Part shown: positions 178 to 59,284 of the stretch, one piece after another
How positions within the stretch are numbered: position 1 is the stretch's first letter
Layout of the letters: each line of letters opens with the position of its first letter
Source: Scyliorhinus canicula
Taxonomy: Eukaryota
DNA: 64,000 nucleotides
Direction: 5' to 3'
Assembly (NCBI RefSeq): GCF_902713615.1
Contig: NC_052160.1
Span: 137,310,737-137,374,736 of the forward strand
Notes under the pieces: model-generated
What the model saw: only the letters and a program-made list of their open reading frames with translations
Database searches by the model: none
Told to the model about the DNA's origin: nothing
Made by a program: the position numbers and the translations under genes

Positions 178-268
178 CTTATACTTTCCCGTGCACCATA
201 TGACTGAAACAGTATAAATCACCATGAGAGCAAAGAGCACCCAGTGAATCACAACCCAGATAATGTAA
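178..268 (-). CDS. Transmembrane exon of receptor paralog A (YIIWVVIHWVLFALMVIYTVSVIWCTGKYK)
   Basis: 91-bp exon with ttttgctcag acceptor and gt donor. Same length and phase as the TM exon at 44268-44358, with about 15 differences in 91 nt by manual alignment. Downstream intron sequence is also homologous. Confidence 0.85.
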
Positions 269-22638: not shown

Positions 22639-23433
22639 CTCTCCTTTAGGAACAGTCTCTGAACAGGTGAACTCCTGGACAACTGGAGAGTTCTGGGAGA
22701 GCACAACGCCTCTTTTGCTGTTTGACAGTTTGTGTGGCTGTCCATAAGAATCCCCCAACTTCAGACCTCCTCTTACCTGTTCGAACCTGCACATTCTGGA
22801 TTCCACACTCCTGTTCTTCCAAAACCTCACTTCAGTTGCGGCACCTGATGATTTTAATGGCCAGCTGCCTCCATGAGTCGCGCATTTGTGAAGATCCGCC
22901 TGATTCGTGTCCCGCTCCCGCAAAGACGGGAAATGCCAGTTTCGGGGTGAAATTCCGGCCATTTCCGGGATTTTCACCAGGACAGAGAGCCTTCAAACCT
23001 GGGTGTCAGGTTAATGCTTCACCTGAAAGGCATCACCAAGCTCTGCGAACCCAACTGGGGGAGGAACATCTGGGCCTTAGTGTCCCTTACTATTACACAG
23101 GAATGTTAGTGTAGATTTTATGTTCCAATCTCTGGAGTGGGACGTGACCCTGTAATCCAGTGATTCAAAGGTGACAGCGCAAGCGCCGAGACCCAACTTA
23201 ACAAAATAACAATAGCGATTGCACATTAAAAATACATTATGGCAGCAAAGTGCTTGGGTACTGATAGTATGGCTCCAAATATCAATGTTTTCTTTCATCA
23301 CAAACTAGCTACTGAACTCTGAATACATTAAGTGGAGAATTTACTCTGTACACTGTGACGAATCTTATTAACATGTTTTTCTTTGTATTAAGCAGTTATT
23401 TGCTGATCAATTTCTGAAATGTTATCTCCTCAG

Positions 23434-23730
23434 TTTCAGGTGCATTGTTGGCTGGAAATAAAGTAACAGGAATTTTGGGAAGAGCGATCACAATAAATTG
23501 TCACCATGATGCATGGTACCAGCAAAACATGAAATATTGGTGGAACAGTTGGACTCGTGAGTGTTCCTATTTAATGAGAACAGATGATCCAGGTAGACGG
23601 AGACGGAGAATGTCAATTACAAATAACAAGACACAAGGAATATTTGTTGTCACTATGGAGAATCCTCGCTCAGGAGGTACAGGATGGTAAGCTGTGGAAT
23701 TGATAAACATGGCCAAGATGAATTATTTTC
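23434..23730 (+). pseudogene. Orphan CD300/pIgR-like V-domain pseudo-exon
   Basis: Acceptor context ctcctcag-tttcag as in the gene B V exon. KYWC has become KYWW, a 1-nt deletion gives TGG TAA instead of TGG TAC AGC TGT, and the 3' end is replaced by Harbinger sequence. No leader exon found nearby. Confidence 0.9.
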
Positions 23731-23960
23731 CAGCTCCTCATCATCCAGATCCTCTCCCCTTTGCATCGGCAGGTTGTGTAGCCTGCAGCAAGCCACTCTG
23801 GGGAGCGCACGGGAACAGTCTGCCAGATCTGTCCAGGCACCAGAACCTCATTTTCAGGATGCCACAGGTGACTCTGGGTTCTGGAATGAGCCTCGTTGTA
23901 CCTTCTTTCACATGGGTGCCATCAGCAACATCTTTTGTGCGTAGCCTTTGACCCTGAGGA
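23730..23960 (-). mobile_element. Harbinger (HARBI1-like) transposase C-terminal fragment
   Basis: GILKMRFWCLDRSG and VACCRLHNLPMQRGEDLDDEEL on the minus strand. Confidence 0.85.
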
Positions 23961-29272: not shown

Positions 29273-29324
29273 ATGGCCAGGAAAATAATGTGGATACTGA
29301 TTCTTCTTATCTCGTCTCTGGCCA
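29273..29324 (+). CDS. Gene B exon 1: leader MARKIMWILILLISSLA (alternative start at 29288)
   Basis: Hydrophobic signal peptide; phase-1 donor gtgagt; homologous to the leaders of A and C. Confidence 0.9.
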
Positions 29325-29344
29325 GTGAGTACAGTCAGAGCTGA

Positions 29345-29368
29345 ATATTCAGATAATCAGCGTTAGTT
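29345..29368 (+). promoter_or_regulatory. Conserved intron-1 GATA-containing 24-mer, gene B
   Basis: Identical to 10264-10287 (-) and 59306-59329. Confidence 0.6.
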
Positions 29369-29699
29369 TAAGTCTGGTGTACGGTTTATACGGCACAGAT
29401 GTTTAAACAATTGGAAACAACAGAAGACACAAAATATTGAGCAAAATTATGTAATATTCTGTGGGAAGCCTCGTAACTTTCTTTGTCTATCCTAGTGTAT
29501 CACAGAAATATTTACCTTTATAAAGAAAACTAAAGTCAATTGTAAATTAAAAATAAAGGACGCACTCATTGGGCGGAATGTACTGGCTGCAGCCCAGTAG
29601 GATTGGGATGGGAAGTGGCAGGTAGATCCCGGGAGACGCTTCTGAATGAATTGGGGAATCATCTCAAATTCAAGTTGTTCTTGCTATTCGAAAGGAAGA

Positions 29700-30210
29700 C
29701 TTGCATTTTTGCATCTGACAGTGTTGTCAGAGACCCCTCACATCCAGGCTTTGCCCTCTTCCAGACCCTCCCATCAGGCAGAAGATAATAATATTAATCT
29801 TTATTAGTGTCACAAGTAGCCTTACATTGACACTGCAAGGAAGTTACTGTGAAAATCCATTACAGATACAGAAGTCTGAAGACCCACACACCCAGACTTA
29901 GGAACAGCTTTGTCCCCACAGCTGCCAGACGCCTCAATCACTCTCCCCCTCGGACTGATCTGTTCCCTGTAAGAACACTATTCACGACGCCCTATGCTGC
30001 TCTTGCTCATGTCGTATTTGTTTTGATTGGCCCTTGTTCTCGATTACTTATTTGTCGGTGTACTGTGTACTTTTTCACATGCACTGTAACAATCTACTAT
30101 TCTTTTTTGTCTGCTGTGTACGTACTGTGTACTTTTCCTTGGCCGCAGAAAAATATGTTTCGCTGTACTTCGGTACATGTGACAATAAATCAAATCAATC
30201 AAATCAAAAA
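29700..30210 (+). mobile_element. Rex1/Babar-type LINE 3' end, interrupted by a 70-bp inverted SINE tail (about 29786-29858)
   Basis: DPSHPGFALFQTLPSGRR joins YRSLKTHTPRLRNSFVPTAARRLN once the insert is removed; ends in gacaataaatcaaatcaatcaaatc. Confidence 0.75.
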
Positions 30211-30548
30211 ACATGTTTCACAAGCCCGAGACATCGCAAAGGGCTTGACTGGCAATTACTTTTCAAGTAGCTTTTGGCTTCCTGACTCGAGAGGCGAGAA
30301 TATTATGACTGAGCCATGGTGAACACACTAACGATAGTAACTGTGCTTCAAAGGTAAAATCTTGGCTGTGAGGTGCTTCATCACGTCCTGATTCCATGAT
30401 AAGATTAATTTTTTCCTTTATCGCAGACTTGAATGAATTAAACTGTATTAATATAGGCAGCAAAGGGATTCCTCTGTACGCAGTGTTAGCTTCTTTCAGA
30501 GTGTATTCGTTTCTATTCAGCCTGGTTCCTGAAATGCTGTCTCCTCAG

Positions 30549-30869
30549 TTTCAGGTGGATTGTGGGCAAAGAGCAAAGTCACAGGAGCTGTGGGAAGAAA
30601 GATCACAGTCGCTTGTCACTATACCAGACAATACAAGCAAAACATGAAATATTGGTGCGACGGTCGGACTCGTGAGTGTTCCTATTTAGTGAGAACAAAT
30701 GATCCAGGTGGACGGCTTGGGAGAATGTCGATCGCAGACAACAAGATAAAAGGAATATTTGTTGTTACTTTGGAGGATCTTCGCTTGGGAGATACAGGAT
30801 GGTACAGCTGTGGAATTGATCAACCTGGCAAAGATACAATGTTCGCTGTACGCCTACAAATATTTACTG
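30549..30869 (+). CDS. Gene B exon 2: CD300/pIgR/TREM-like V-type Ig domain
   Basis: 321 nt, phase 1-1, open. TVACHY, KYWCDGRTREC (the extra Cys pair typical of CD300/pIgR/TREM V domains) and DTGWYSCG; canonical ag/gt. Confidence 0.95.
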
Positions 30870-31042
30870 GTACGTTTCTCGCTGATTATCTTTATTAATC
30901 TCTATTGAAATGTCTGATCATTGTTTTCTCCGGGAGGAAACACGGCAGCTCCGATATCCCGTGTCTCTGCTGCAGTGCAGAGTCTGGCAGGCAGAGGGCA
31001 GCGGTCAGGGAAACTGACTCTTGTTACACAAACCCAATTCAA

Positions 31043-31346
31043 TTAATCTTATTGGTGTCACAAGTAGGCTTACATTAACACTGCAATGAAGTTACTGTGA
31101 AAATCCCCTAGTCGCCACATTCCGGCGCCTGTTCGGGTACACTGAGGGAGAATTCAGAATGTCCAATTCACCTAATAACCCCGTCTTTCGGGACTTGTGG
31201 TAGGAAACCAGAGCACCCGGAGGAAACCCACGCAGACACGGGGAGAAAGTGCAGATTCCGCACAGACAGTGATCCAAGCTGGGAATCGATCCTAGGACCC
31301 TGATGCTGTGAAGCAGCAGTGCTAACCACGGTGCGACTGTGCCGCC
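31043..31346 (-). mobile_element. SINE (HE1-type head, gcctacttgtgacaataa-type tail)
   Basis: Same family as 9449-9747. Confidence 0.88.
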
Positions 31347-31904
31347 CAAAAGAGTAGCTGGAAGAGATTGCAACAAAAAGTAGCAACTTTAAGGCCAGTG
31401 GACGGACGGCCTGGTGTGGGAGGAGGGGGCTTGTTTCATTGAGAATACATGTTTGGGTTATTTTTTAAAAAGGGGTTTAATATGGAGGAGAAAGGTCAAA
31501 ATCTAAAGCTGAGCTCAATCTTGAGTTCTGAAGTCTGTAACGTACCCAACTGGAAGATGAGATGCTTCTCCTCCAGAAGCACCAGGCTTCACTGGAGCAT
31601 TGCAGTAGGCTCAGGACGGACATGTGGGCTTTTGAGTCATGAGTTATCCATATGGCATACTCAATCCTCTTATCTAAAATATTACTATGGATTGCAAATG
31701 ACTGAAACCCAAGAACTAATCCTTGCAGTAACCCGTAGGTTACAGCTGGCCAACCTGAAATATCCTGTTCATTCTGACTCTGTTTTCTGTCCTAATTCTG
31801 TGTAATAGCTTCTGTTGTGCTTCCTGAGGTAGGATTAAGTGGAGAAATGGCAAAGTATCATTTTTGGCACTCAAGTCTGTGCGTTATCCGGATCGCGATC
31901 TTGA

Positions 31905-32638
31905 GCCACTGAGTCTAATTTATTTCCCCCCACATGAAACAATCTGCGCCTGATTCACCCACCCCCGTGGGTCAGCCCAGCACTGCAATCAAGGGGGCGC
32001 TGCGTTTGAACAAAGCCTCAACACTCACTCTCAGTCAAGACTCCATCAAACGGACAACCCAGGCCCATTACCCTGTTCAGATGTCAATGAACCCTTTGCA
32101 GGGGGAGGTGTTGCGGAGCTGCCGGACAACAAGCCTCCTAATGGGTGAACTTGGAGGCGATGAGAGCACCTCGGGTCCTCCTGCCCTGGTGCACCCTGGC
32201 CACTGTCTGTCCTTCCTCCAGGTCCTGAAAACTTTGGGCTCTGTGGCTTCGGACTGTGTCCAGCACCGCCACACTTGGCCGGGATCCGTGCCGCTGGCCG
32301 GGGAGGCTTCAGTGATGGCTGGGGGGGGGGGGGGACTGGTGGGGGGTGGCCAGGGGGTGGGCTGTGGGGTTGCAGTTTGCGTCGTGTCAGTGCTCGGCCG
32401 GCACCATGTTGTACGGCGCGACCGCTGCAGGTCGTCAGCCGTGTATATGCGCGGCCCGGGACCCGGCCATTCTCCGGCCGTTTTCAGCACGGGAGGCGGG
32501 TGTTTTGGTCGGCGCTGGTGCTAGTCTCTCACCGGTACCAGAATCAGTGCGGGGTTCGCACCGCTTTTTTACGCATAGACCTCCCGTGGATTCTCTGTTC
32601 GAGACGGCACTTAGCCGCAGGAACAGAGAATCCTGCCC
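31905..32638. mobile_element. Harbinger-derived non-autonomous element retaining the transposase C-terminus
   Basis: Minus strand encodes RVHQGRRTRGALIASKFTH* near 32139-32198; right end agagaatcctgccc; homologous by eye to 58369-59038. Confidence 0.6.
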
Positions 32639-33098
32639 GGGATATATTTTAATTCTTTAAATGCTAGTCATTGCTCATCTATCGTCCTAACCTTTAATTA
32701 AAGCAAAATAATGCCAATGTTGGAGATCAGAAATAAAAACAGAAGTAGCTCACTTGGGGGGGGGGGGGGGGGGGGGGGGGGGGTGGGGGGTGGGTGCGGT
32801 ATTGCCTATGTCTGGGGGAGGGGGTGGGGATGACATTATTCATCGGTGGGGGCTGTGGGGGACTCCCAAGCTCACTTAGAGATCGGGCACCTTTGCAAAA
32901 TGCTGGCTGATCTCTGAACAGTAGGTCTCGCCGGCGAGTTCAGCTCCCCACTGACTAAAACATTTCTACAAGTGTGAGCGAGACCAGGGAGAAACTCCCC
33001 AAGTCCCAAACAGCGACGAAGTGTATGTGGATCCAGGTCTGGATCTCACTCAGAAAGCCAACTGGAAACATGGCGCCAATCACCCAAAACAACACTTG

Positions 33099-33215
33099 GG
33101 GCTGGATTCTTCGGCCACGCCCACTGCATGATCACCACGGGGACCATGTAGAGGTCCATTGACCTCGGGAGGGAATTTCTGGTCGGCGGACGGGCACAGC
33201 CGAGGAATCCTGCCC
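33099..33215. mobile_element. Short MITE of about 117 bp
   Basis: TIRs gggctggattcttcgg / ccgaggaatcctgccc. Confidence 0.65.
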
Positions 33216-33284
33216 TTAGTCATTTTTTGGGAGAATTCCGCCCAAGGTTTCAAGTTCAGTTTCACATTGCACTCCAAACTTTAT

Positions 33285-33999
33285 GGGCAAAATTCTCCGC
33301 CCCCCACGACGGGTGGGAGAATAGCGGGAGGGCCTTCCCGACATTTTTGCCGCCCTCCCGCTATTCTCCCCCCCCCCCCCCGCCGAAGTCCCGACCCGAA
33401 TCGCTGCCGCCGTTGTTTTACGGCCGGCAGCGATTCTCAGCTGTTAGATGGGCCGAAGTCCCAGCCCTTTCCGCCGTTTTTACGAACGGCAAACACACCT
33501 GGTCTTGCCGTTCGTAAAAACGGCGTGACTAACTCGCTATTAATAACCATGGCACCGATTGGCACGGCCGTGCCAAGGGTGCCATGGGCCCGCGATCGGT
33601 GGGCACCGATCGCGGGCAGCGGGCCCGATGCCCGCGCACTACTTGTCCTTCCGCCGCCCCGCAGTATCCATTCGCGGGGCGGCTGAGGGGCAACCCGGCC
33701 CGCGCATGCGCGGGTTTTGCGCAAAAACACGATGACGTCACCCGCGCATGCGCGGGTTGGAGTCTTCCAAACTGCGCATGCGCGGCTGATGTCATATGAC
33801 GCGTCAGCCGGCGCTAACTCCGGCAAGCGGGCTTAACGATTTTCGTTAAGCCCGTCTTGCCGGAGCCTACGGCGTCGGGCTGCTAGCCCCGACCGGGGAC
33901 CAGAATCGGTCCCCGGTCGGGAAGGGGCGCGCTGCCGTAAAACCCGCCCGGGTTTTACGCCAGCTTTACGATTTCTCCCGTTTTGGGAGAATCGCGCCC
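33285..33999. mobile_element. Harbinger-type MITE with 3-bp TSD TAT
   Basis: TAT at 33282-33284 and 34000-34002; TIRs gggcaaattctcc / ggagaatcgcgccc; CpG-rich interior. Confidence 0.85.
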
Positions 34000-34129
34000 T
34001 ATTTGTTTCTCATTCCAGAGGTGCTGCCAGAACTATTGAGTTTTTCCAACATTTTCCTTGTTTATATCCTATCTATTAATATATTTGGCCAACTTCCACC
34101 CTATACCAACCTCGTTTCCGTGGTTTTGA

Positions 34130-34620
34130 TCAACAACCCTATTTTCAGACTTCTTTAAATCACTTTCAAGCTCAATATAAAACTCCATCATGTTATGATC
34201 ACAGAACAAGCCCTTTCACCACAGCCCCATATTAGCTCCAATATAGTCTGTTCCCTAATTGATTGCTTGACAAACTGAACTAGGTAACTATCTTGTATAC
34301 ATTCCATGAACTCGTTTTCCACACTTTTACTACAAATTTGACTTGCCCCAATCTATGCGGAGATTAAAATCCCCCTGAATTAATGTATTACCCTTATTAT
34401 ATACACTTCTAATTTCCTGATTCTTATTTTGTCTTAAACTAAGACCACTGAATGTGGAACCTATGGACAATCTCCACCAATGTTTTCTGCCCTTGCTGTT
34501 TCTTAGCCCCATCCAAACATATTCTACAGATGTTGCGGGCTAAGCTAATTTCTCACTATTGTATTTAGCCCCTTCTTTATTACGATGGCCATCCCTCTTT
34601 ATTTCTTGTTATTTTCTATA
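34130..34620 (-). mobile_element. CR1 LINE endonuclease-region fragment
   Basis: Minus strand gives NKGNTLIQGDFNL.IDW, the GDFN motif of the APE domain. Confidence 0.7.
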
Positions 34621-35236
34621 TCTTTACTTAATCATCCAAGTTCGGGTCAATATTCAACCACATCTCCCAAATGGCTATTCGATCAAAGCTAGTCATTGCT
34701 ATCTGTTGTGAGTGCTTAACATATTCAGATAAAATAGATTTAGCTTTGACCTTTTTATATTTCCTGTGTGCTCCGACCATTGTACAACCCCTGCCCCTTA
34801 TTTATTTGAAGCCCTGTCTCCTGTCCGAGTTATTCAATTCTTCACGACACCAGTCTGGGCCCATTTTAAATGGAGTAGATCCCAATGGATCAGTCCCCTC
34901 TTTCCTCAGCACTGGTGCCAGTGACCCATGCAGTGAAACCTTGCCTCGATCATTTCAACCAAGCATTTAGTTTTGAATCAGTTGTTCATTATATCCACCC
35001 ATGTGAATCAAGTGACAATCCAGACACAATCACCTTTTCAGTTATCGTTTTTCATCAACTCTCTAACTCTTCAAACTCTCGGCAGAAAAATGCCCTTGTT
35101 TTACCGACATTGTTGGCTCCTATGTGGACGATGGCAGCCGCATCCTCCCCTCCCCCTCCAAGATCTTCTCCAGCCACTGGGGAAATGTCTTTAACCCTGG
35201 CACTGGGCAGGCAAGAAAACATCAGTCACAGTCACA

Positions 35237-35574
35237 GGGGGCCTCACGGTAGCATGGTGGTTAGCATCAATGCTTCACAGCTCCAGGGTCCCAGGTTCGA
35301 TTCCCGGCTGGGTCACTGTCTGTGTGGAGTCTGCACGTCCTCCCCGTGTGTGCGTGGGTTTCCTCCGGGTGCTCCGGTTTCCTCCCACAGTCCAAAGATG
35401 TGCGGGTTAGGTGGATTGGCCATGCTAAATTGCCCGTAGTGTAAGGTTAATGGGGAGATTGTTGGGTTACGGGTATACGGGTTACCTGGGTTTAAGTAGG
35501 GTGATCATTGCTCGGCACAACATCGAGGGCCGAAGGGCCTGTTCTGTGCTGTACTGTTCTATGTTCTATGTTCT
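35237..35574 (+). mobile_element. HE1-type SINE, full length
   Basis: A and B boxes plus (gttctat)n tail. Confidence 0.92.
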
Positions 35575-35746
35575 AAATGTGGAGAATATTATTTATTACT
35601 CTGTCCATAATGCCAAAAAACACTTTCACGTTCCTTTGCATTCTTGGAATGGCATCTTGCACTTTGGCACCATGGTCATTTCGCTCATCCAGCATTTAGT
35701 GCCTGTTCTCATCCATATGTTGAGTGAGTATCTGCTACTTCTTGAT

Positions 35747-36036
35747 GGACAGCACGGTAGCACAGTGGTTAGCACTGTCGCTTCACAGCGCCAGAGACCC
35801 GGGTTCAATTCCCGGCTTGGGTCACTGTCTGAACGGAGCGTGCACATTCTCCCCGTGCCTGCGCGGGTTTCATCTGGGTGCTCCTGAAAGACGTGCTTGT
35901 TCGGTGAATTGGACATTCTCAATTCTCCCTCAATGTACCCACTGCAGGAATGTGGCGACTAGGGGCTTTTCACAGTAAATTCATTGTTGTGTTAATGTAA
36001 GCCTTACTTGTGACAATAATAAAGATTATTATTATA
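35747..36036 (+). mobile_element. SINE (HE1-type head, gcctacttgtgacaataa tail)
   Basis: Same family as 31043-31346, in the opposite orientation. Confidence 0.85.
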
Positions 36037-36704
36037 CCTGCCTCAGCATCTTCCAGTCCCTGACCATCAGCCAATTCTAAAGGCTAGAATTTGCACTCTC
36101 CTGTCGCATGTGGCCTGACGTCCCCTGACATGTCTATCCGGCCCTGAGCTGTCTCAATTGTAAAGGGATTGAAGGGGTTGGGAGGCGGGGTAGGGAGTTA
36201 GATGCGGGGTGACGGCGTGTGGCAGACCAGCCTTCCTTGGGACTATTGAGGTCTTTAAGTAGCCTTTTAAGGGCTTCATCCTGCCTGCAATGGTATCTTC
36301 CATGGCAAAGAGAGATCCGTGCTAAGCAAGAGGGTCCACTGAGCAGATCCAAACTCATTACACTCCCCCCAGGGAAAACTAGTCTTTAACGGAGACTCTT
36401 TCCTGCCAATTCACATTCAAGAGCTGAGCAATGAAACAATGACTCTCCACCACTAAGAGAGATTGTTACCCCTGATATTCACATCCTCAGTATCATTGCT
36501 GCTGGCTTGACCTGGAAACCTATCATGTCCCGAAATAACGGTAGCCAGGGTTGTTCAGGCTGTTAGGAGGTTGGATAGATATGGATGCATTGCTGAGATT
36601 AAAATATGACAGGGCCTGATTGAGACACAGAAGTGCTGAACATTGGATTGTAGTTTATTTTTGGAGGTTCAGTCAACATCTGAATGTTTCTTCCTTTCCC
36701 ACAG

Positions 36705-37022
36705 AATCCGTATCTGTTCCTCTACTTAGCCTTTTACCAAATGTCTCATGTTCTGTGAGCCCAGTGTCCGTCTCCTGTGAGTCTCTCCGGGGCTCCCTCC
36801 CCATTCAGTACATATGGAATGAAAAGACCCCGTCTGGAGATTCAAAGATCTCCGACACCAATAAACTGGATCTCCGTTGTCGATCCTTCAAACAGCAACA
36901 GCATCAATATTACTGCACAGCCTCAAATACTCAAGGGAAACAATCCAGTCAAATGGTGAATGTGTCGGTCATCAGCCTTTCAGAGCAGAGCTGCAGTTAT
37001 GTGATACTAAATGGAAGCAGTG
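36705..37022 (+). CDS. Gene B exon 3: second Ig domain (C2/I-set, FcR-like/PECAM-like)
   Basis: 318 nt, phase 1-1, open. VSVPLL, VSVSCES.RGSLPIQYIW and YYCTASNTQGKQSSQMVNVSV; cttcctttcccacag acceptor and gtaagt donor. Confidence 0.92.
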
Positions 37023-37647
37023 GTAAGTGTTACCGTCAACAAACCATAACCAATGTTTCCAATGAATGTTTATTCAAACTGGTCACAACCTAAGTTGCTA
37101 CAGTCACTCTGAGAAATGTAACCGGTCAAATTCTGTCTATTCTGCCCCTCAACAGTCATGGACAATTTGAATATTATTTTAACTACGCGGTTCTTTAAAC
37201 AGAGAAACTCGTTAAAATATTAACTTCTTGTCCACACAGTTGCATCAGCAAACCCTCATTCAATATTTCACTGTGTGTTCATTGCAGAACTGACCTCCAG
37301 GACATAACAGTGTTGGCAATGCCACCAAGGGATAGATTGTCCAGTGGTGGCAGTGCCCAGCTCCCTGGCTAAAGGTTTTCTTTATGTTTCACAAAGGCAG
37401 AGAAGGTGATATCTGAATTGCAAACCTGTGTCCTTTAAAACCTTCCATAATAACTCGGTATCACCAATGCCTAGATACAGGAACAAAATATAAATAATAA
37501 GTAGAAACAAGGCTCTTTCCTCGCTACCAGAGAGTGGGAAATTACACAGAAATTAATTCTTCCAAACCATTTCCCGAGGTTCCATTTGGAAAGAGTTCTC
37601 TCTCCGTTAATCAGCTGAATCTGAATACTATCTTTATGTCTCAATAG

Positions 37648-37732
37648 GAGCTGAATATACTTGTGCCGTTTTAACAACAATATCACCAAAAACATCAAAT
37701 GCAACTTCAAGATTTACATCTGTCAGTAAAAG
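37648..37732 (+). CDS. Gene B exon 4: Ser/Thr-rich stalk (GAEYTCAVLTTISPKTSNATSRFTSVSK)
   Basis: 85 nt with phase-1 acceptor (tctcaatag) and phase-2 donor (gtacag). This is exactly the phase change needed to link exon 3 to the TM exon. Confidence 0.85.
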
Positions 37733-38026
37733 GTACAGTTTTCTCATTGCTGATGTTTTCATTGGCATTGCTTTCAAATGGAAATAAATATTGATCAGTT
37801 TTGACATGAAGCTTTACAATAATTGGGCAGAATGGACTGTGATTACATAACGCTACTGGCTGTGATTTTCCCACCGCGTTGCGCCTGGCGCCAATCCCGT
37901 TACATTGGGTGGGTAGCGGGAGAGGCCAAAAACGGGGTTTTTGCCGAACCGATCGCGATGCACCCGAACCTTGATGCCCGACACAATGTGGATCACGCCC
38001 TCGCTGGGCATAATCCGGATCAGCAT

Positions 38027-41000
38027 ATCTTTTTTTTGAATAAACATTTTATTGAGGTATTGTTTGGTTTTACAACAACGACAAAATAAACAATACACAT
38101 GTCTATCAACATAGTGCAAAAAAAAAGGCTGCTACCTCCCAAGCAGGTCCCACCTTCATTAACCCCCGACTCTAAACTAACCCCCCCACCTTCTGCTGAC
38201 GATTAATTTCCCGCAAAGAAGTTGACGAACGGTTGCCACCTCCGGGCGAACCCTAACATTAACTCTCTCCAGGCGAACTTGATTTTCTCCAGACAGAGAA
38301 AGCTAGCCATGTCCGATAGCCAGGTTTCCGACTTCGGGGGCTTTGAGTCCCTCCAAGCTAATAGTATTAATAGTATCCGTCTCCGGGCTATCAGGGAAGC
38401 AAAGGCCAGAATGTCTGCCTCTTTCTCCTCCTGGATTCCCGGATCTTCCAATACCCTGAAATTCGCCACCTCCAGACTCGGTGCCACCCTTGATTTAACA
38501 CCGTGGACATGGCATCCACAAATCCCTGCCAAAATCCCCTAAGCTTCGGACATGCCCAGAACAAATGGACATGGTTTGCTGGCCCCCCCACATACCTTGC
38601 ACACCTGTCTTCTACATCTGCTCATCCGGGCCACTGTCTTGTGAGCCCGGTCAACAACCTTAAACTGTTTCAGGCTGAGCCTGGCACATGTTGTGGACGC
38701 GTTGATTCTACTCAACGCATCCACTCAGAGACCATCCTCTATCCCTCCTCCTAACTCCTCTTCCCATTTGTGCTTCAGCTCCTTAGTCTGCATGACCTCT
38801 GACCTTCCCTTCTCCCACCCTAACTCTGGAAACTACCCTATCCTGAATCCCCCTTAGCGGTAGGAGCGGGAAGGTTGAAACCTGTCTACGCAGGAAGTCC
38901 CGCACCTGCAGGTACCTAAATTTGTTTCCCCTTGCCAATCCAAATTTTTCCTCCAGCTCCCACAAGCTAGGAAAGCTCCCCTCTATAAACATATCCCCCA
39001 TCCTCTCGATCCCTGCTCTCCGCCATCTCCGAAATCCTAAATCCATCTTTCCCGGAGCAAACCGGTAGTTATTACAAATTGAGGACCAGACCGATGCTCC
39101 CTCCGCTCCCACATGCTTCCTCTATTGCCCCCCGACTCTTAGGGCTGCCACCACCACGGGGCTGGTGGAGTACCGTGCCGACGGGAACGGCAGAGGCGCC
39201 GTTATCAACGCCCCCAAACTGGTGCCCTTACACGAAGCCGCCTCCATCCGCTCCCATGCCGACCCTCCCCCCACCACCCACTTCCTGATCATGGCTATAT
39301 CCGCCGCCCAATAATAGTTACTGAAGTTTGGCAGCGCCAGCCTGCCCTCTCCCCAGCTCCACTCAAGCAGTCCCTTTTTTACTCGCGGGGTCTTGCCCGC
39401 CCATACAAAGCCGGTGAGTACCTTATTGACCCATTTAAAGAAGGACCGCAGAATAAAGATGGGGAGACACTGGAACACAAACAGGAATCTCGGAAGGACC
39501 GTCAACTTCACCGTCTGGACCCTCCCAGCTAGTGACAACGGGAGCGCGTCCCAACCCCGAAAATCGTCTTTCATTTGATCTACCAGACGGGCCAGATTAC
39601 GTTTGTGTAACCGTTCCCATTCCTGCGCCACTTGGATGCCTAGTTACCTACAACTTCCCCCCCCCACTCTAAACGACAGCTCCCCCAATCGCCTCTCCTG
39701 TCTCCTTGCCAGGATCGCGAACATCTCGCTTTTCCTCATATTTCGTTTGTACCCCGAAAACCGGCCGAATTCCCCCAGAATCCTCATGATTCTTCCATTT
39801 CCCCCACTGGGTCCGACACATACAGGAGCAGGTCATCTGCGTAAAGTGAGACTCTGTGTTCCATTCCTCCCTGGACCAACCCCTTCCAGCCCCTTGAGGC
39901 TCTCAGAGCAATTGCCAGCGACTCTATAGCTAGCGCAAACAACAGCGGGGAGAGGGGGCCTCATCCCCTGCTTCATCCCCCGGTGTAGCCTAAATAGTCT
40001 GTTGTCGCCCTATTCGTCCGTACACTCGCCACAGGAGCCTGATACAGCAACCTGACCCAGTCAATAAAGCATTGTCCAAATCCGAACCGTCCCAGCACCT
40101 CCCACAAATATTCCCATTCTACTCGATCAAAAGCCTTCTCTGCGTCCATTGAAACCACTACCTCCACCTCCCTACCTTCTGGGGGCATCATGATCCCATT
40201 TAGAAACCTCCCTACATTGGACACCAACTGCCTTCTCTTAACAAACCCCGTCTGGTCCTCCTCAATCACATCCGGAACATAATCTTCAATCCCAGAGGAC
40301 AGAATTTTGGCCAGCAGTTTGGCATCCATATTCAATAGGGATATCGGCCTGTAGGACCCACACAGCTCCAGATCCTTGTCCCGCTTCAGGATCAGCGAGA
40401 TCGTGGCCTGTGACATCGTTGGGGAAGCACCCCTCTATCCCTAGCTTAATTGAATGTCCTCATCAACAGCGGCCCCAATATCCCAGAGAACGTTTTGTAG
40501 AACTCCGCTGGGTACCCGTCCGGCCCCGGGGCTTTACCCGCATGCATGGTGCTCAGACCCTCCACCATCTCTTCGATCCCAATCAGGGCTCCCAGCCCTT
40601 CTACCAGCTCCCCGTCCACCTTCCGGAAATTCAGCCCCCCGAGGAAGTGCCTCATCTCCTCTGGCCCCGGTGGGGGTTCCGACCCATACAGCCTACTGTA
40701 AACCTACTTAAATGCCTTATTCACCCTACCAGGTTCCTATCTCCATCCTTTACTTTCCCTATCTCTCTGGCTGCCTCCCTCTTTCTAAGCTGCTGTGCAA
40801 GCATTCTGCTGGCCTTCTCTCCGTGCTCATAGATCACCCCCCTCGCCTTTCTCAGCTGTTCCATCGTCCTCCCTGTGGTTAACAAGCCGAACTCCGCCTG
40901 CAGCCTCCGTATTGAGATCTGCTCCTCTCTAACCACCGCCTTCAGTGCCTCCCAGACCAGCGCTGCTGAAATTTCCCCCGTGTCATTGACCTCCCGGTAA

Positions 41001-43190
41001 TTCTGAATACATTTCCTCAGCCACCCGCACACCTCCTCGTCCGCTAAAAGCCCCTGTCTAACCTCCAGTGCGGGCGCTGGTTACCGTCTTTACTAACCTG
41101 TAGGTCAACCCAGTGCGGGGCATGGTCTGAGATTGTGATCGCCGATAACTCCGGGTCCACCACCCCCGTCAGTAAAGCCCTGCTCAGAATAAAGAAATCA
41201 ATCTGGGAGTACACTTTATGCACGTGTGAGTAGAAGGAAAACCACTTTACTCTTGGCTGCCCAAAGAGCTTGACCGGTCTAAACCAGGGTCAATAACTGT
41301 TTTGAAGTCCCCTCCCATGACCAGCTTATGCAAATCCAGGACCGGTATCTTCCCCAGCATCCTCTTTATAAACTCCAGATCGTCCCAATTTGGCGCATAC
41401 ACATTTACTAATACCACCTGCCCCCCCTCCAATTTCCCACTGACCATAATGTACCGGCCTCCCACATCCGAAACTATTCTTCCCGCCTCAAACACCATCG
41501 CTTGTTGATCAGGATTGCGACCCCTCTAGTCTTTGAGTCCAGTCCCGAATGAAAGACCTGTCTGACCCAGCCTTTCCTTAATCTATTCTGATCAGTTACT
41601 CTAAGGTGCGTCTCCTGCAACATTACCACGTCCGCCTTCAGTCCCCTCAGATGCGCGTACATGTGTGCCCCCTTGACCGGCCCATTGAGCCCTCTTACAT
41701 TCCAGATGATCAGTCGAGTTGGGGAGCTCATCGACCCCCCCCCCCCCCCCCTTCACCAATCAGCTACCCCTCTCTTGGGCCAGTCACCAGTCACCAGCCC
41801 CGCGCCCTGCGCCTCCACCGGCCCGCCCCCAAGCAGCCCGTGCCCCACGCCTCCACCGGCCCGCCCCCAAGCAGCCCGTGCCCCACCGGCCCGCCCCCAG
41901 GGAGTCCGTGCCCCACGCCTCCACCGGCCCGCCCCCAGGGAGTCCGTGCCCCACGCCTCCACCGACCCTCCCCCAAGCAGCCTCCGTCCCCAACTTCCTC
42001 TCTGTCCCTCAGCAACAGTCCCTCCCTCATAAGCAGAACATTTCCCCCCTCCCCCTAGTAACAGCACTAAGTAAATCAACCCCTTTGATAAGCCTAACTT
42101 CTGTTCACCCCCCACTACGCTTCCGTACGCTAGCCCGTCCAGGTTGGTGGCCCTCGCCCCTGGCGCCAGACAATCTCCCACCTGTTGTCCCTTCCCCACC
42201 TTCTCCCCCCCGCTCATACATGCATATTCAAATGAAAAACAATCCCAACACAATTGTCCGACAGAGATGAGAAAAAACCCCAAGTTGAACTCAAACGAAG
42301 GAAAAGGTCAAGCAAAAGATCCAGCATCTGAACAAACACACCTCCATCCCCCAACAGTGCAAATGCAAACTTTGACCTCACTCAGCTCTGCAGCTGGTCC
42401 CAGATCCATACAGCAGGCATTACACATAATGTCCGAAAAGAAACCCCCACAAGAAACAAGAAACCTTTTATTTGCAAAACATAAACGTAACAGCCAAATT
42501 CCAAATTCAAAGTTCTCAGTCCGACACCAGTCCTTTCCTTTTCCAAAGTGAAGCGACTCAAAATAGAAATGTTGCTCCTCGTATGTGACCCAGAGGTGGG
42601 CTGGGTCCAACAGCCCGAACTTCACTTTTTTCTTGAATAGGGTCGACCTGATCTGATTGAATCCCACTCTTCTCCTGGCCACCTCCGCACTCAGGTCCTG
42701 ATAGATCCGCAGGATACTGTTGTCCCATTTACAGCTCCGTGTCTGCTTGGCCCACTGTAAAATATGCGCCTTATCCAAATACCTGTGGAATCTCACCACC
42801 ATTGCCCTTGGGGGCCTCCCATTCGCGGCTTCTTCGCGAGCGCTCTGTGAGCCCTGTCCACCTCCAAGGGTCGGGGGGATGCTCCATCCTCCAGCAGCTT
42901 CTCAAACATTGTCTGCGATATTGCCCCAGCGTCTGCTCCTTCGGACCCCTCCGGGAGCCCAACGATCCTCAGGCTCTGCCGGCGGGACCTGTTCTCTAGG
43001 TCCCCCACCTTCTCCAGGAGCCTTTTCTGCTGATCTCTCAGCATCCCCACCTCCAACTCCACCGCAGTTTGATGTTCCTCCTGTTCAGCCAGCGCCTTCT
43101 CTGCTTTCTGGATCGCCCGATCTTGGGCATCCAGTCTAAGCTCCAGCCGCGAAATTGCCTCTTTAATCGGGTCCAAGCAGTCCTGCTTCT
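38027..43190 (-). mobile_element. L1/Tx1-clade LINE, near full length but broken (ORF1, APE endonuclease, RT), antisense in gene B intron 4
   Basis: ORF1: LENRSRRQSLRIVGLPEG and EVDRAHR. ORF2: WNVRGLN..MLQETHL, SYRPISLLNMDAKLLAK and SMDAEKAFDRVEW. Poly-T on the + strand at 38030. Frameshifts and deletions present. Confidence 0.95.
41799..41985. repeat. GC-rich tandem repeat (unit about 37 bp, about 5 copies) in the L1 inter-ORF region
   Basis: ccgtgccccacgcctccaccggcccgccccca recurs with variants. Confidence 0.85.
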
Positions 43191-44267
43191 GCGATGGGAA
43201 TTTGTTCCCATTTAGTTAAATCCCTCGGGCACAATTCTCCCGAAAGGGAACAAAGTTCCCTCGCGAGCGCGTTCAGCCACGTGTCTCCCGGCACTCGTAG
43301 TGTGCGACCACGATTTGTATCGTGGGGAGCTCAGCTTGCGTGCGCAAGAAGACCAATCGGGTTGCCATTTTTAAAGGCCAACGATTTCGATGAATCTCAC
43401 AATAAGTTTCGAGTATCGCGGATTGCGCAAGGTGCCTCTCGGCTGATTCAACAGCCTCGTCATGTGACCTAGTTGGGTGCAACGAGGCCGGTACATCGCA
43501 TTGTCATTAGTCATTGTTTGGGAGAATTTCACCCATTGTGTTTAGTAACAAAGTTGCTGTGGAAATTCAGATAAAGAAGTCAACATTTTTTGTTTGCCTC
43601 CCCTCAGATGTTGCAGTTTTCATTATTCATGTGAATCACTTCACCATGCACTCAACCTCATGGAGATGTAGCTGTCACACCCCAGTCATGGCAGATTTCC
43701 TGTGTGTTCTGGAGTATCTCTGACAGGGACATTTCAATCACTGTCATTGTCTCCTTCACGGTTGTCGGGTTTTACAGGTTGTCCCCAAACTGAGAAGGTT
43801 AAAGGTCGTCTGCTTCCATTTGGTTAAGAATTTCCTGTGAGGAGATGCACCAGGGAATTGTGGGATGATAAAAACAGGAAGTTCTGGAAAAACTAAGCTC
43901 CCTCAGCATCTGTCGAGAGAGGAACAGAGTTAACATTGAGTTGAATATGACTGTACTTCAAAACAGTGTTAGATGGTGTTATTCTGAGTTCCTTAGTCAC
44001 TGAACAGATACGGCACCATTGCTATATTGCACCATGAGAGATATGCTGTGGAAATCTAATTAAATTTGCTCCATTTGATCTTTATCTAATAATCATGAAA
44101 TTGATCAGTAAAACGTTAGTTTATTTTTCCAGCGGATATGCCTTGTCTCTGCTGCTTTACGTTGCTACAATACACTAAGGTCACAGCAGAGACAAGTGAT
44201 TTACGTTTCAAACGTGAAGTAGTCTTATTTCCTGCAAGTAATGTTGTAATCTTTCCGTTTTCCTCAG

Positions 44268-44358
44268 TTACATTATCTGGGATGTGATCCGCTGGGGGCT
44301 CTTTACTCTGCTGGTGATTTGTGCTGTTTCAGTCACATGGTGTGCAGGAAAATCTAAG
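44268..44358 (+). CDS. Gene B exon 5: transmembrane with Arg (SYIIWDVIRWGLFTLLVICAVSVTWCAGKSK)
   Basis: 91 nt, phase 2-0, ttttcctcag acceptor and gtgagc donor. In frame with the stalk exon; paralogous exon at 178-268. Confidence 0.92.
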
Positions 44359-44829: not shown

Positions 44830-46570
44830 CAGTGGTACCAACAACAAAGGGGTGAGGATCTGCATATAGCTGAATATCAGAAGTTAGGAGATAAATTAAA
44901 ATGCTCGTCCTCAAATGTATTGATCTCAGGATTGCTGCCAGTGCCATGCACTGGCGAGAGCAGGAATAAGAGGATAGATAAGATTAACGTGTGGCTGGAG
45001 AAATGGTGTACCCGGGAGGGATTTAGATTCTTGTGGCATTGGGACCGACTCTGAGGAAGTTGGGACAGGTTGCACCCGGATAGAGCTGAGATCAATATCC
45101 TCTGGGGGGCTTTAGTTATTTCTGTTGGGGAGATTTGAAACTGATGGGGGAATGGGACCCCAAGGATAGGCTTAGATGGGTCAGATTCTGATCAGGAAAC
45201 AGGAAGTAGGACATTAGTCAGTGATGCAGTCAGCGACTCAGAAATCCAAAAGAAACAAAGGTTAAAAAGCAAATCCATCAAAGGAAACTGCCGGGGTCGA
45301 ACTGTTCATACTTCAGTTCAAGGAGCATTACAAACAAGGCAGATGAACTAAGGGCACCGATAGACACATGGCAGCAGGATGTCGTTGCTATAACGGAAAC
45401 CTGGCTAAAGGAGGGGCAGAATTGGCAGCTCAATATCCCTGGATGTAGAGATTTCAGGCAGGAAAAAAAGGATGTCAAAAATGGTGGGGGCAGCATTATC
45501 GTTTAAAGAATCAGTTACAGTTGTGAAAACGGATGATGCAATAAACTAGTTAACAATTGAAACTTTATGGGTTGAGTATAGGAATAAAAAAGGGGCAGTC
45601 ACACTTCTAGGAGTGTACTACAGACCTCAAAACAGTGAGAGGGAGCTAGAAAAAGATATATATGGACAAATTTCTGCCTGTAGGAATAAGAGGGCAATAA
45701 TAGTAGGAGGCTTTAATTGTTCCAATATCAATTGGGTTTCAAGCAATATAAGGGATATTGAGGGTGAAAATTTCATCTACTGTGTCCTGGATTTTTTAAT
45801 TAAACGATACGTGACAAGCGCAACGAGAGGAGACACAATTCTGGATTTAGTCTTGGGAAATGAACATGGACAAGTGGGTGAAATGACAGTAGGCGACCAT
45901 ATCGGGAATAATGACCACATCAGTTGGATTCAGGATTATCATGGAAAAGGACAGAGATAAATCAGAAGTAAAATGTTTAAACTGGTGTAAGGTAAATTTT
46001 ACAAAACTGAGAAGTGATTTGGCTGAAGTGGGCTGGACAAGACTGCTAAAGGGTATGTTAGTGGTAAACCAGTGGGAAGCATTAATTAGTGAGATCCTTA
46101 TGGTACGAAGTAGACATGCCCCCTCCAAAAATACAAATGTTACTGCCAACCCCCATGGTTGTCCAGAAAAATACAGGAGAAGATTAAACAGAAAAAGAAA
46201 GCTTTTGATAGTCACAAAAAACTCAAGACTGCTGATAGCCTAGTATAGAAAGTACAGGATCAAGTAAAAAAAGAAATAAGGAAATCAAAGAGAGAGCATG
46301 AAAAGATATTAGCAAAAGCCAGGGGTCATGGATTCAAGCTAAATGGCAGAAAGTGTAGAGGGGACGTGAGGGAAATCTGGAATTCGCTGCCTGAGTAACT
46401 TGTGGAGACAGAGACCCTAAACTCTATTAAGATCCACATCTTAGGTACTGTACGCTGCAGGGCTATGGGCCATGTGCAGCAAGATGGGATTAAATAGGGC
46501 ACTTTGGTGTCTTTGGGCCAGCATGGACATGATGGACCGAATGGCCCCATTCTGGGCTGTATCATTTCTA
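44830..46570 (+). mobile_element. CR1 LINE relic: ORF1 SGNH-esterase-like segment, APE endonuclease and a 3' tail
   Basis: VLISGLLPVP...RNKRIDKINVWLEKWC.REGFRF (ORF1); NKADELRA..VAITETWL and GVYYRP...GGFN (endonuclease); tail ends ttctatggtcctat. Confidence 0.85.
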
Positions 46571-49154: not shown

Positions 49155-50544
49155 TCCTGAAACTGCTCCACTTCTTCAGAAGCTTTGTCTCAATTTGTTG
49201 CCATTTGCAGAATTCTGTTCAAAACTGAAGTGTCAATTAATTCATCGTTCTCATTCTCAATGATTCTGATGTTTGTCTTTTCCAGCCACTCAATGATTGC
49301 AGTTCTCACAGCTTCTCCAATGTGGGGAAATGAAGATTCTGGGCTTGCATCAACATTGATGGAATTTTGCCTCCTGATCAAACATTCATTACTCACCAGC
49401 TTTTTTGAAGCATGTTTATTAAGGTTTTACATTTTAGCAAACAACACAACAAAATTACAAAAATGATACATTGCCATAAGCAAAGAAAGCTTCAGCGTCC
49501 ATGAATACGGAGGGGGACAGGAGAACAACATGAGAACTGGCTGGATATAATCATTGGACATAGCTAGGTCTCTCTGCAGCCCAACCAAAGACCAAGAGAG
49601 AAACAAGATGAGGCCATGAAAAGATGGGAAAATGGTGCGCACGTTCCCACACTGCGCCTGCTCACAATTACCGCGGGAGTTCAGGATAAATTATCTCCGC
49701 CATGTTCAATCACGCACCAATATGTTTCTTCCTCAACTTGAGCAGCACCAACGACACATCACAGCTTCCTCTCCTCGGATAGCAAACCCGCCTGCACACA
49801 TGCAGGAACCAATCACGGATTCTTCGTACCCACCCTGACAACTAAAAACAAGGAAAATACCTGGAATCCCCAGTTCTACAGGGAGTTGCATGTATACCAC
49901 ACAGTGCAACTTGACCCCAATCTCAGACCCAATACAGAACAAATGGTCCGTAATTTCCTGCCAGCAGTGGGCAGCCGCGGGGTCACCGATTTTGAAAGTG
50001 AAATCTGCACAGCTTCCTGAACTCCGGTGATGCATCCAACCTTCCTTCCTCGCCGGCAGCCTGGGGGCCTCCAGCGGCCTGGACTGCACAGGCTCCAGCG
50101 CAGCGCAGGAGCAGTGCAGCCCTTGTGACACCGCCAGCTGGGGAACGCCCAATGAGGGCAGGCATTTAAATAGCAGCTTTAGTTAGAAAACAACAGGCAA
50201 CTATTTTAACAAGTGTTTTAACAAGTATATAGACTGCTCTTAACAGTTATTTTTGCTCTGTCTTTTAAACAGGCAATACTGTTGTTGTTGAGTCCTTTAA
50301 AATAATTTTTAATCTTAATTTTTATGATTATAGGTGCTCATTGATAAGTGAACAAAGGTTTGGCTATTTGTTTTAAATCTCTGAAACCATTTAATCTAAC
50401 TATAATATTATATAATTTTGCATGCAGCATACTTAAAAAGTTTGTATGTTTTAATTTAAGTTATGGTGATAAAATTTGAAAAGCGCCCCAGGCTTTGTGC
50501 TGTCACTGTCCTTGTAACATCTGATTTTTTTTGATTAGTGCTTA

Positions 50545-53599: not shown

Positions 53600-55195
53600 G
53601 GATTCACTAAAGGGAAATCATGCTGGACAAATCTTTTGGAATTTTTTGAGGATGTGACCAGTAGTGTGAACAAGGGTGAAACAGTGGACGCTCTGTATCC
53701 GGAGGCTTTTGACAAGGTCCCACACACGAGATTAGTGAGCACAATTAAAGGGGCAGCACGGTAGCACAAGTGGATAGCACTGTGGCTTCGCAGCGCCAGG
53801 GTCCCAGGTTCGATTCCCGGCTTGGGTCACTGTCTGTGCGGAGTCTGCACGTTCTCCCCGTGTCTGCGTGGGTTTCCTCCGGGTGCTCCGGTTTCCTCCC
53901 ACAGTCCAAAGACGTGCAGATTAGGTGGATTGGCCATGATAAATTGCCCGTAGTGACCAAAAAGGTTAGGTGGGGTTATTGGGCTATGGGGATAGGGTGG
54001 AAGTGAGGGCTTAAGTGGGTCGGTGCAGACTCGATGGGCTGAACGGTCTCCTTCAGCACTGTCTGTTCTATGTCTATATTCTATGGTATTGGGGGTAATG
54101 TATTGACGTGGATAGAGAACTGGTTGGCAGACAGCAAACAGAGAATGGGAATAAATGGGTCCTTTTCAGAGTGACTAGTGGGGTATCGCAGGGTTCAGTG
54201 CTGGGACCCCAGCTGTTCACAATATACATTAAAGATTTGGGCAAAGGAATTGCATGCAATATCTCCAAATTTGCAGACGACACTGAGCTGGAGGACAGTG
54301 TGTGCTGTGAGGAGGATGTAAAGAGGCTGCAGGGTAACTTGGACAGGCTGGCTGAGTGGGCGAATACTTGGCAAATGCAATACAATGTGGGTAAATGTGA
54401 GGTTATCCACTTTGGTGGCAAAAACAGGAAGGCAGATTATTATCTGAATGGTGGCTGTTGAAGAAAAGGGGAAATGCAACGAGTCCTCGGTGCAATGGTG
54501 GAACAGTCGCTGAAGGATGGCATGAAGTACAGCAGGCGGCGAGGAAAGCTAATGGCATGGTGGCCTTCATAGCGAGAGGAGATGAGTATAGGAGTAGGGA
54601 TGTCCTGCTACAGTTATACAGGGCCTTGGTGAGGCCACACTTTGGGTATTGTGTGCAGCTTTGGTCTCCTAGTTTGAGGAAGGACATTTGTGCTATTGAG
54701 GGTGCCCAGCGAAGGTTCCCCAGACTAATTCCCGGGATGGCAGGACTGACAAATAAAGAAAGACTGGATCGACTGGGCTTGTACTCACTGGAGTTTAGAA
54801 GAATGAGAGTGGATCTCATAGAAACATAAAATCCTGATGGGACTGGACAGACTAGATGCGGGATGAATGTTCCCGATGTTGGGGGCGTCCAGAATTAGGG
54901 GTCACAGCCTAAAAATAAGGGGTCAGCCATTCAGGACTGAGATGAGGAAGAACTTCTTCTCTCAGAGAGTTGTGAGGTTGTGGAATTCTCGACACAGAAA
55001 GCTGTTGGGGCCGGTTCATTGGATATATTCAAGAGGGAGTTGGACATGGTCCTTGCGGCTAAAGGGATCAAGGGGTATGGAGAGAAAGCGGCAGTGGGAT
55101 ACTGAATTTGCATGATCAGCATGATCTTATTGAATGGTACTGCAGGCTTGAAGGGCCACATGGCCTATTCCTGCCCCTATTTCCTATGTTTCTAT
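53600..55195 (+). mobile_element. CR1 LINE RT and 3' end, interrupted by an HE1-type SINE (53750-54083)
   Basis: KGKSCWTNLLEFFEDVT, AFDKVPH, VTSGVSQGSVLGPQLFTIYI and SKFADDTEL; tail ttcctatgtttctatgttt. Confidence 0.93.
53750..54083 (+). mobile_element. HE1-type SINE
   Basis: A and B boxes plus tail. Confidence 0.9.
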
Positions 55196-59247: not shown

Positions 59248-59284
59248 ATGCGGATTCTGATTCTTCTTATTTGTTCTCTGCCCG
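59248..59284 (+). CDS. Leader exon of paralog C, MRILILLICSLP, phase-1 donor
   Basis: 37 nt followed by gtgagt; clear homolog of the gene B leader and flanks. Downstream exons were not found in the window. Confidence 0.9.

Follow-up and report, generated by a model that had tools for sequence, protein, structure and literature searches.

Background

Paired activating and inhibitory receptors of the immunoglobulin (Ig) superfamily are central to innate control, and the cartilaginous fishes are the oldest living jawed vertebrates having them. In mammals, the CD300 family is made of such pairs, with activating forms that have a charged membrane residue and a short tail, and inhibitory forms that have ITIMs (immunoreceptor tyrosine-based inhibitory motifs). 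Among the cartilaginous fishes, the modular domain immune-type receptor (MDIR) family of the clearnose skate was reportedly described by Cannon et al. in 2006 in Immunogenetics. That paper (volume 58, page 362; PMID 16738934) is cited in PMC3031540, along with accessions for MDIR2-4 between ABC86796 and ABC86799. In addition, teleost and holostean fishes have the DICPs, which are built as D1-D2 or D1a-D2a-D1b-D2b, occur in inhibitory, activating, secreted and ambiguous forms, and lie in clustered families (bioRxiv 10.1101/2021.06.11.448072). In this study we analyse a receptor gene, here called gene B, in 64,000 nucleotides (nt) of DNA from the small-spotted catshark Scyliorhinus canicula (assembly GCF_902713615.1, contig NC_052160.1, positions 137,310,737 to 137,374,736 of the forward strand). 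The whole stretch is referred to as the window, and all positions below are counted from its first letter. An earlier reading of the same letters (the original prediction) had placed an intact activating-type receptor at 29273-44358 and had supposed it to belong to a paired-receptor cluster. Overall, our analysis indicates that gene B is intact, has six exons, belongs to the MDIR family and encodes a predicted type I membrane receptor of 304 residues. RefSeq already lists it, though by a generic name that misleads, and the family has been known since 2006.

Gene B among the skate MDIRs

A search with the whole protein returned 76 relatives, almost all of them shark, ray and skate proteins, under automatic names such as pIgR-like, FCRL5, CMRF35-like, CXADR-like and A33-like. 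They include, from the clearnose skate, MDIR5 (P0158), 51% identical along 87% of the query (E 5e-139), and MDIR2 (P0195), also 51% identical (E 1.4e-71). A search seeded with MDIR5 further brought in MDIR3 (P0216), a member from a chimaera (Callorhinchus) and additional catshark members located on the same chromosome. MDIR1 is absent from the matches of both the whole-protein and the MDIR5-seeded search. On this comparison of sequences gene B is a homologue of the skate MDIRs, and the kinship with the family that had been proposed is borne out, with MDIR5 and MDIR2 as clear homologues. The family as a whole consists of many clustered genes, some of activating type, some inhibitory and some of other forms, and the window itself includes the first exon of an inhibitory paralogue, a pseudo-V exon and a second membrane exon besides gene B.

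Exon structure and expression of gene B

Six segments of the window, when joined, give a 915-nt reading frame whose translation is identical to the protein P0009, plus the stop. P0009 is RefSeq XP_038676045.1 of Scyliorhinus canicula, a protein of 304 amino acids named 'polymeric immunoglobulin receptor-like' and located on the 147-Mb chromosome, and it is the 100% identical match to the V exon in our V-exon scan of 1.84 billion representative proteins. The first five exons had been proposed before, with canonical splice sites, matching phases and 867 nt, or 289 codons, free of stops. All of this is confirmed on the sequence, and the five exons correspond to residues 1-289 of XP_038676045.1. 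As a complete gene, however, the five-exon model does not stand, for the last coding exon at 49286-49333 was missed; the model stops at a splice donor (44358) and not at a stop codon, and its coding sequence is therefore incomplete. The six exons run through phases 0-1, 1-1, 1-1, 1-2 and 2-0, and then from 0 to the stop, with AG after a pyrimidine tract at every acceptor and GT at every donor, and the introns between them are 1224, 5835, 625, 6535 and 4927 nt long.

Exon 1 (29273-29324, on the forward strand like all exons of gene B) holds the start codon and the signal peptide MARKIMWILILLISSLA plus 1 nt, covering residues 1-17 of P0009, and ends in phase 1 at the donor CCA/gtgagt; a second in-frame ATG at 29288 lines up with the start codon of the paralogue. 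The exons for the two Ig domains and the membrane helix are treated below with the parts of the protein that they encode. Exon 4 (37648-37732, phase 1-2) could be settled only by a homologous protein, as splice sites and phase alone gave hundreds of candidates; homologous stalk exons are found in P0172, P0179 and P0176. Exon 6 (49286-49333) lies 4.9 kb downstream of exon 5, beyond the span of the original prediction, and encodes the cytoplasmic tail PLNDCSSHSFSNVGK, with 15 residues, no tyrosine and the TGA stop. This tail can be aligned with those that relatives in Chiloscyllium and Hemiscyllium have (TLDEADGHNNTKMGK and ALNEADGHNDTKV), and exon 6 is therefore supported independently of RNA. 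Read-through past exon 5 would give VSITDFTRIILSAL and then a stop, and may represent a minor isoform, also with a short tail lacking tyrosine. The introns had also been said to hold transposons, and remains of long interspersed nuclear elements (LINEs) are indeed found in introns 4 and 5, as well as in an intergenic stretch (38200-43200 on the minus strand, 45613-46243 and 54108-54829 on the plus strand). Their domains include RVT_1 (4e-18 and 6.7e-10) and an endonuclease (1e-6), the minus strand of intron 4 holding the RVT_1 match at 4e-18 together with the endonuclease at 1e-6, and intron 5 an endonuclease-reverse transcriptase. A pseudogene reading of gene B is rejected by the open frame and the conserved exons.

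As for expression, the runs X1 and X2, which we guessed to be RNA, have all 27 sampled words of the V exon. The same two runs have 8-10% of the words of the 1028-nt stretch made of exon 3, intron 3 and exon 4 (36705-37732), for which the likely DNA runs have 45-74%. This pattern fits transcription with the intron removed. Two other likely RNA runs, X32 and X33, have 26% of the words of the stretch from exon 3 to exon 4, yet are not among the holders of the V exon. Their words may come from a near-identical paralogous exon for the second Ig domain elsewhere, or from a transcript without the V exon.

Ectodomain and stalk

Exon 2 (30549-30869) encodes a V-set domain, which Pfam detects at 1.7e-13 with 51 bits against a cut-off of 26. 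The canonical B-F disulfide pair is present as Cys40 and Cys105. The extra pair of the KYWC-x6-C type, which had been read as a mark of this class, is also present as Cys54 and Cys61 in KYWCDGRTREC, with K51 and C61 at least 90% conserved in a 30-row family alignment. By sequence, the best solved relatives are pIgR domains and CD300LF (6e-19 for a single domain), followed by CD300a, NKp44, TLT-1, TREM-1 and TREM-2. We also built an AlphaFold2 (AF2) model on the 30-sequence family alignment, in which the predicted local distance difference test (pLDDT) score of the V domain is about 90-97. The best structural match of this V model is mouse CD300lf, with a TM-score of 0.91, a root-mean-square deviation of about 2 A and 38-41% identity, and further matches are human CD300f (0.88), CD300a (0.86-0.87) and pIgR D1 (0.83). 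Pfam, the sequence matches to solved structures and the structural matches all point to a V-set domain of the CD300/pIgR/TREM type, as the original prediction had it. Outside the cartilaginous fishes, the nearest sequences to this V domain are 'pIgR-like' proteins of bony fishes and a caecilian, with 31-40% identity.

The second Ig domain (Ig2), of C2/I type, is encoded by exon 3 (36705-37022). Its best match among solved structures is FCRL5, with 2.5e-29 summed over five of the FCRL5 domains, and Pfam gives Ig_2, Ig_3 and Ig_C17orf99 at about 1e-3, below their cut-offs. As judged from the FCRL5 match it is an FCRL-like Ig domain, which agrees with the FcR-like second domain expected earlier. 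Exon 4 encodes a Ser/Thr-rich stalk with a conserved Cys (EYTC) and one of the four N-glycosylation sites of the protein. Two membrane-proximal cysteines are shared by activating and inhibitory forms alike: Cys221 at the end of Ig2 (NCSY) is invariant in the 30-row alignment, and Cys236 in the stalk (EYxC) is present in most rows. These cysteines could pair with each other to close a small loop next to the membrane, or join two chains by a disulfide.

The membrane helix and the activating type

Exon 5 (44268-44358, phase 2-0, donor AAG/gtgagc) encodes the transmembrane helix YIIWDVIRWGLFTLLVICAVSVTWCAG plus KSK, with Arg267-Trp268 in it. In the AF2 model it forms a single helix of residues 259-286 with pLDDT 87-90, containing Asp264 and Arg267. 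The basic residue that had been expected in the membrane segment lies within this predicted helix, and we infer its depth in the bilayer: Arg267 would lie some three or four residues further in than the point where the membrane span probably begins, with 19 hydrophobic residues after it. The tail has 18-21 residues, KSKPLNDCSSHSFSNVGK, with no tyrosine and with neither an ITIM nor an ITAM (immunoreceptor tyrosine-based activation motif).

To view the family as a whole, 141 family proteins were sorted by helix, giving 48 with a helix of the gene B type, 58 with an uncharged helix and 35 without a recognisable membrane helix. The pair Arg267-Trp268 is invariant in all 48 shark, ray and skate relatives with the gene B type, and the consensus of these helices is S-[YF]-[MI]-I-W-x-V-[GI]-R-W-[LV]-L-F-[AT]-L-L-x-I-x-x-I-S-V-x-W-F-T-R. 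No ITIM is found in 45 of the 48, whose median tail is 18 residues, and the three exceptions seem to come from gene models that were fused, or from a weak match, SQYRGL. The uncharged helices (for example IYIVLGVLGAILVVFAVSLLLY) come with 1-4 ITIMs in 53 of 58 proteins and a median tail of 114 residues. The association of helix type with ITIMs has a Fisher p of 1.5e-20, a value that overstates the number of independent observations because the sequences are mutually related. The Arg-type helix is found in galeomorph sharks, a cow shark, stingrays, mantas, a sawfish and skates, and is therefore probably older than the split between sharks and rays. A distant 'PECAM-like' member of 313 amino acids (P0266), located outside the window on the same catshark chromosome, combines an L-R-W helix, SSLRWAGFIFLL, with a very short tail, and the Arg-Trp module is therefore present in at least two catshark subfamilies.

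Gene B, for which an activating type had been claimed, has the hallmarks of one, namely a conserved membrane Arg, a short tyrosine-free tail and an adjoining paralogue bearing ITIMs. The activating-type reading is well supported by these comparisons of sequences.

The inhibitory neighbour and the exchange of ectodomains

About 10 kb downstream of the stop of gene B, on the same strand, an inhibitory paralogue begins, the remainder of which lies past the end of the window. Its first exon at 59248-59284 (+) encodes the signal peptide MRILILLICSLP, an exact 12-residue match to P0172/P0255 (LOC119978459/LOC119978458), and has a canonical donor. Both P0172 (408 amino acids) and P0255 (620 amino acids) have uncharged helices and ITIMs: IVYANI/IVYADV and ITYAAV occur in both, and STYASV occurs in addition in P0172, which gives it three ITIM-like motifs. 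LOC119978458 (620 amino acids, V-Ig2-V-Ig2) and LOC119978459 (408 amino acids, V-Ig2) have a common first exon and overlapping gene ranges, and appear to be isoforms from a single inhibitory gene, or else the product of merging in the annotation.

From the 5' flank through exon 1 into the beginning of intron 1, gene B aligns with the neighbour in non-coding as well as coding parts, and the two are therefore tandem duplicates. Their identity is uneven along the protein, with 81% in Ig2, 55% in the V domain and 21% in the membrane exon. Against the activating forms of bamboo and epaulette sharks, it is the membrane exon of gene B that is 67-71% identical and Ig2 that is 55-64% identical. In the tree of Ig2 and stalk, gene B pairs with P0172 (Shimodaira-Hasegawa approximate likelihood-ratio support 94), and the helix type switches at least 6 times among 27 rows. 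When the activating forms are constrained to a single clade, the log-likelihood drops by 144.5 units, with p 1.8e-52 in the approximately unbiased test. From the switches, this rejection and the mosaic identities we therefore conclude that ectodomains have been exchanged or homogenised between activating and inhibitory genes, while the membrane and tail modules stayed distinct, which is the classic pattern of paired receptors. The paired-receptor cluster of the original prediction finds its counterpart here, in an adjoining inhibitory gene of the same orientation with a closely similar ectodomain.

Other remnants of the family in the window

Two further pieces of the family are present in the window. 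One is a decayed paralogous V exon at 23430-23738 (+), 6 kb upstream of gene B and 53% identical to its V domain. It has an in-frame stop (GTGW*AVEL), and two of its cysteines are gone, with KYWW for KYWC and the F-strand Cys lost. No matching Ig2 or membrane exon follows this V exon. The other is a second membrane exon at 178-267 (-), YIIWVVIHWVLFALMVIYTVSVIWCTGKYK, with intact AG/GT sites, which has His in place of the Arg of gene B and Val in place of its Asp. No V or Ig2 exon to go with it is found on the minus strand within the window. In CD89, a His replacing the Arg still supports assembly with FcR-gamma (PMC13107469).

Proposed signalling and alternative readings

On balance we consider it probable that gene B is the activating half of a paired set of activating and inhibitory receptors, and that it would signal via an ITAM adaptor docked at Arg267. 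Under this proposal, the V domain would bind a ligand; the receptor, unable to signal alone, would dock within the membrane through Arg267 to a dimeric ITAM adaptor with paired aspartates; and the inhibitory neighbour, with its nearly identical membrane-proximal ectodomain and three ITIMs, would be the counterpart. That gene B is an activating member is supported at the level of its sequence, and from there we infer that it pairs with an adaptor, which sign its signal has and what it might bind. Among fish receptors, the activating DICPs and NITRs are likewise marked by a charged Arg in the membrane segment (bioRxiv 10.1101/2021.06.11.448072). CD89 binds the FcR-gamma dimer via an Arg near the N-terminal end of its helix, with both aspartates of the dimer needed, while for adaptors with a DxxxT motif (DAP12, CD3) the contact is a centrally placed Lys, replaced by an Arg in NKG2D-DAP10 (PMC13107469). 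Because gene B carries its charge as an Arg close to the top of the helix, an adaptor of the FcR-gamma/CD3-zeta type would be the likelier partner. Our literature searches for shark FcR-gamma or DAP12 returned nothing relevant.

Several observations weigh against this proposal. Asp264, one helical turn above Arg267, could neutralise it, although Asp264 is not conserved and is Lys in rays. The AF2 model is of low confidence in Ig2 and the stalk (pLDDT 31-59, with 38-59 for Ig2), and the coverage of exons 3 and 4 in X1 and X2 is partial. MDIR5, with the same helix, is said to have been described in the abstract of the 2006 paper as lacking activating motifs. Finally, the 19 hydrophobic residues after Arg267 are enough to span the bilayer, so that the Arg may sit at the interface. 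This last point leads to a different reading, in which gene B is a real receptor without ITAM-adaptor signalling, Arg267 is interfacial or contacts a family member or co-receptor, and the product serves as a decoy, a ligand sink or an ambiguous form; the DICP and NITR families do include ambiguous forms without signalling motifs (bioRxiv 10.1101/2021.06.11.448072). We regard it as unlikely, though it deserves some weight. The Arg-Trp pair does not vary in any of the 48 relatives, and the helix is highly conserved at W -4, V -2, F +4, L +6 and +7, I +9 and S +13 relative to the Arg, while the ectodomains exchange freely; a conserved helix with exchanged ectodomains fits a fixed partner inside the membrane. 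Moreover, a positive charge on the outer side runs counter to the positive-inside rule (PMC13107469).

The RefSeq name suggests instead that gene B encodes the polymeric Ig receptor of sharks, or else an Fc receptor, and that its product transports or binds IgM or IgW. pIgR domains are among the best sequence matches of the V domain, and Ig2 resembles FCRL5, an Ig binder in mammals, but gene B has a single V domain, and its 18-21 tail residues do not suffice for a long sorting tail like that of pIgR. In structure, CD300lf, CD300a and CD300f (TM-score 0.86-0.91) come ahead of pIgR D1, and a large, fast-evolving multigene family of activating and inhibitory forms differs from the single-copy pIgR; we find the reading very improbable. 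A narrower conjecture keeps gene B within the MDIRs and supposes that its V domain and that of its inhibitory twin bind shark immunoglobulin, either polymeric IgM or IgW, so that the pair would serve the cartilaginous fishes as Fc receptors. In mammals, pIgR D1, Fc-alpha/mu-R and Fc-mu-R bind immunoglobulin. We offer the conjecture as a long shot; if it were true, the Arg-Trp membrane cassette would be a link to an ancestral adaptor of the FcR-gamma/zeta type. It is hardly credible, in our view, that annotation alone produced the six-exon model or that the gene is not expressed, its exons being relics or parts of different transcripts. A decayed V exon and an orphan membrane exon do lie in the same window, and X32 and X33 hold words of exon 3 apart from the V exon, but the frame is open across six exons under twelve consistent constraints of splicing and phase. 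Every exon, stalk and tail included, has homologues in other species in the same order, and runs that are probably RNA contain the whole V exon but little of the intron.

Comparison with known systems

Gene B can be set beside receptors already described. With CD89 (Fc-alpha-RI) and the other RDD-motif receptors that pair with FcR-gamma or zeta dimers, the likeness is in mechanism only, in one Arg close to the N-terminus of the membrane helix and in the short tail (PMC13107469); the ectodomains of CD89 are Ig domains of the LRC type, unrelated to those of gene B. With the DICPs the likeness is one of layout, as taken from descriptions, since the catshark P0009 is V-Ig2 and both P0254 and P0255 are V-Ig2-V-Ig2. 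With pIgR, gene B has in common the V subfamily with the extra disulfide, but pIgR has two (teleost) to five (mammal) V domains and a long sorting tail, whereas gene B has one V domain and an FCRL-type second domain. A pIgR orthologue was considered as an identity for gene B and ruled out by this architecture of one V, one FCRL-type domain and a very short tail.

The mammalian CD300 (CMRF35-like) receptors come closer in the V domain, where the fold and both disulfides match CD300lf and CD300a. CD300 is, however, a single V domain on a mucin-like stalk, to which gene B adds an FCRL-type Ig domain, and the activating members CD300b/c/d/e have Lys or Glu as the charged membrane residue, in contrast to the Arg near the top of the helix in gene B. 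Membership in the CD300 family itself was ruled out by architecture, with an FCRL-like Ig domain between V and stalk.

Gene B alone adds little to these systems. The main value of the analysis is at the level of the family, in an ancient Arg-Trp membrane exon that is kept with changing ectodomains, and the helix with its Arg267 is a concrete handle for finding the shark signalling adaptor. The closest likeness is with the skate MDIRs, which alternate CD300-like V and FcR-like Ig modules as gene B does. MDIR2 and MDIR3 have ITIM tails like those of the inhibitory neighbour of gene B. MDIR5 shares with gene B the S-Y-x-x-W-x-V-G/I-R-W membrane helix as well as the shortness of the tail, and differs in having two V-Ig2 units, in a skate, against one in the shark gene. 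On the whole, the comparison of sequences across the family suggests that the short-tailed MDIRs may be activating receptors.

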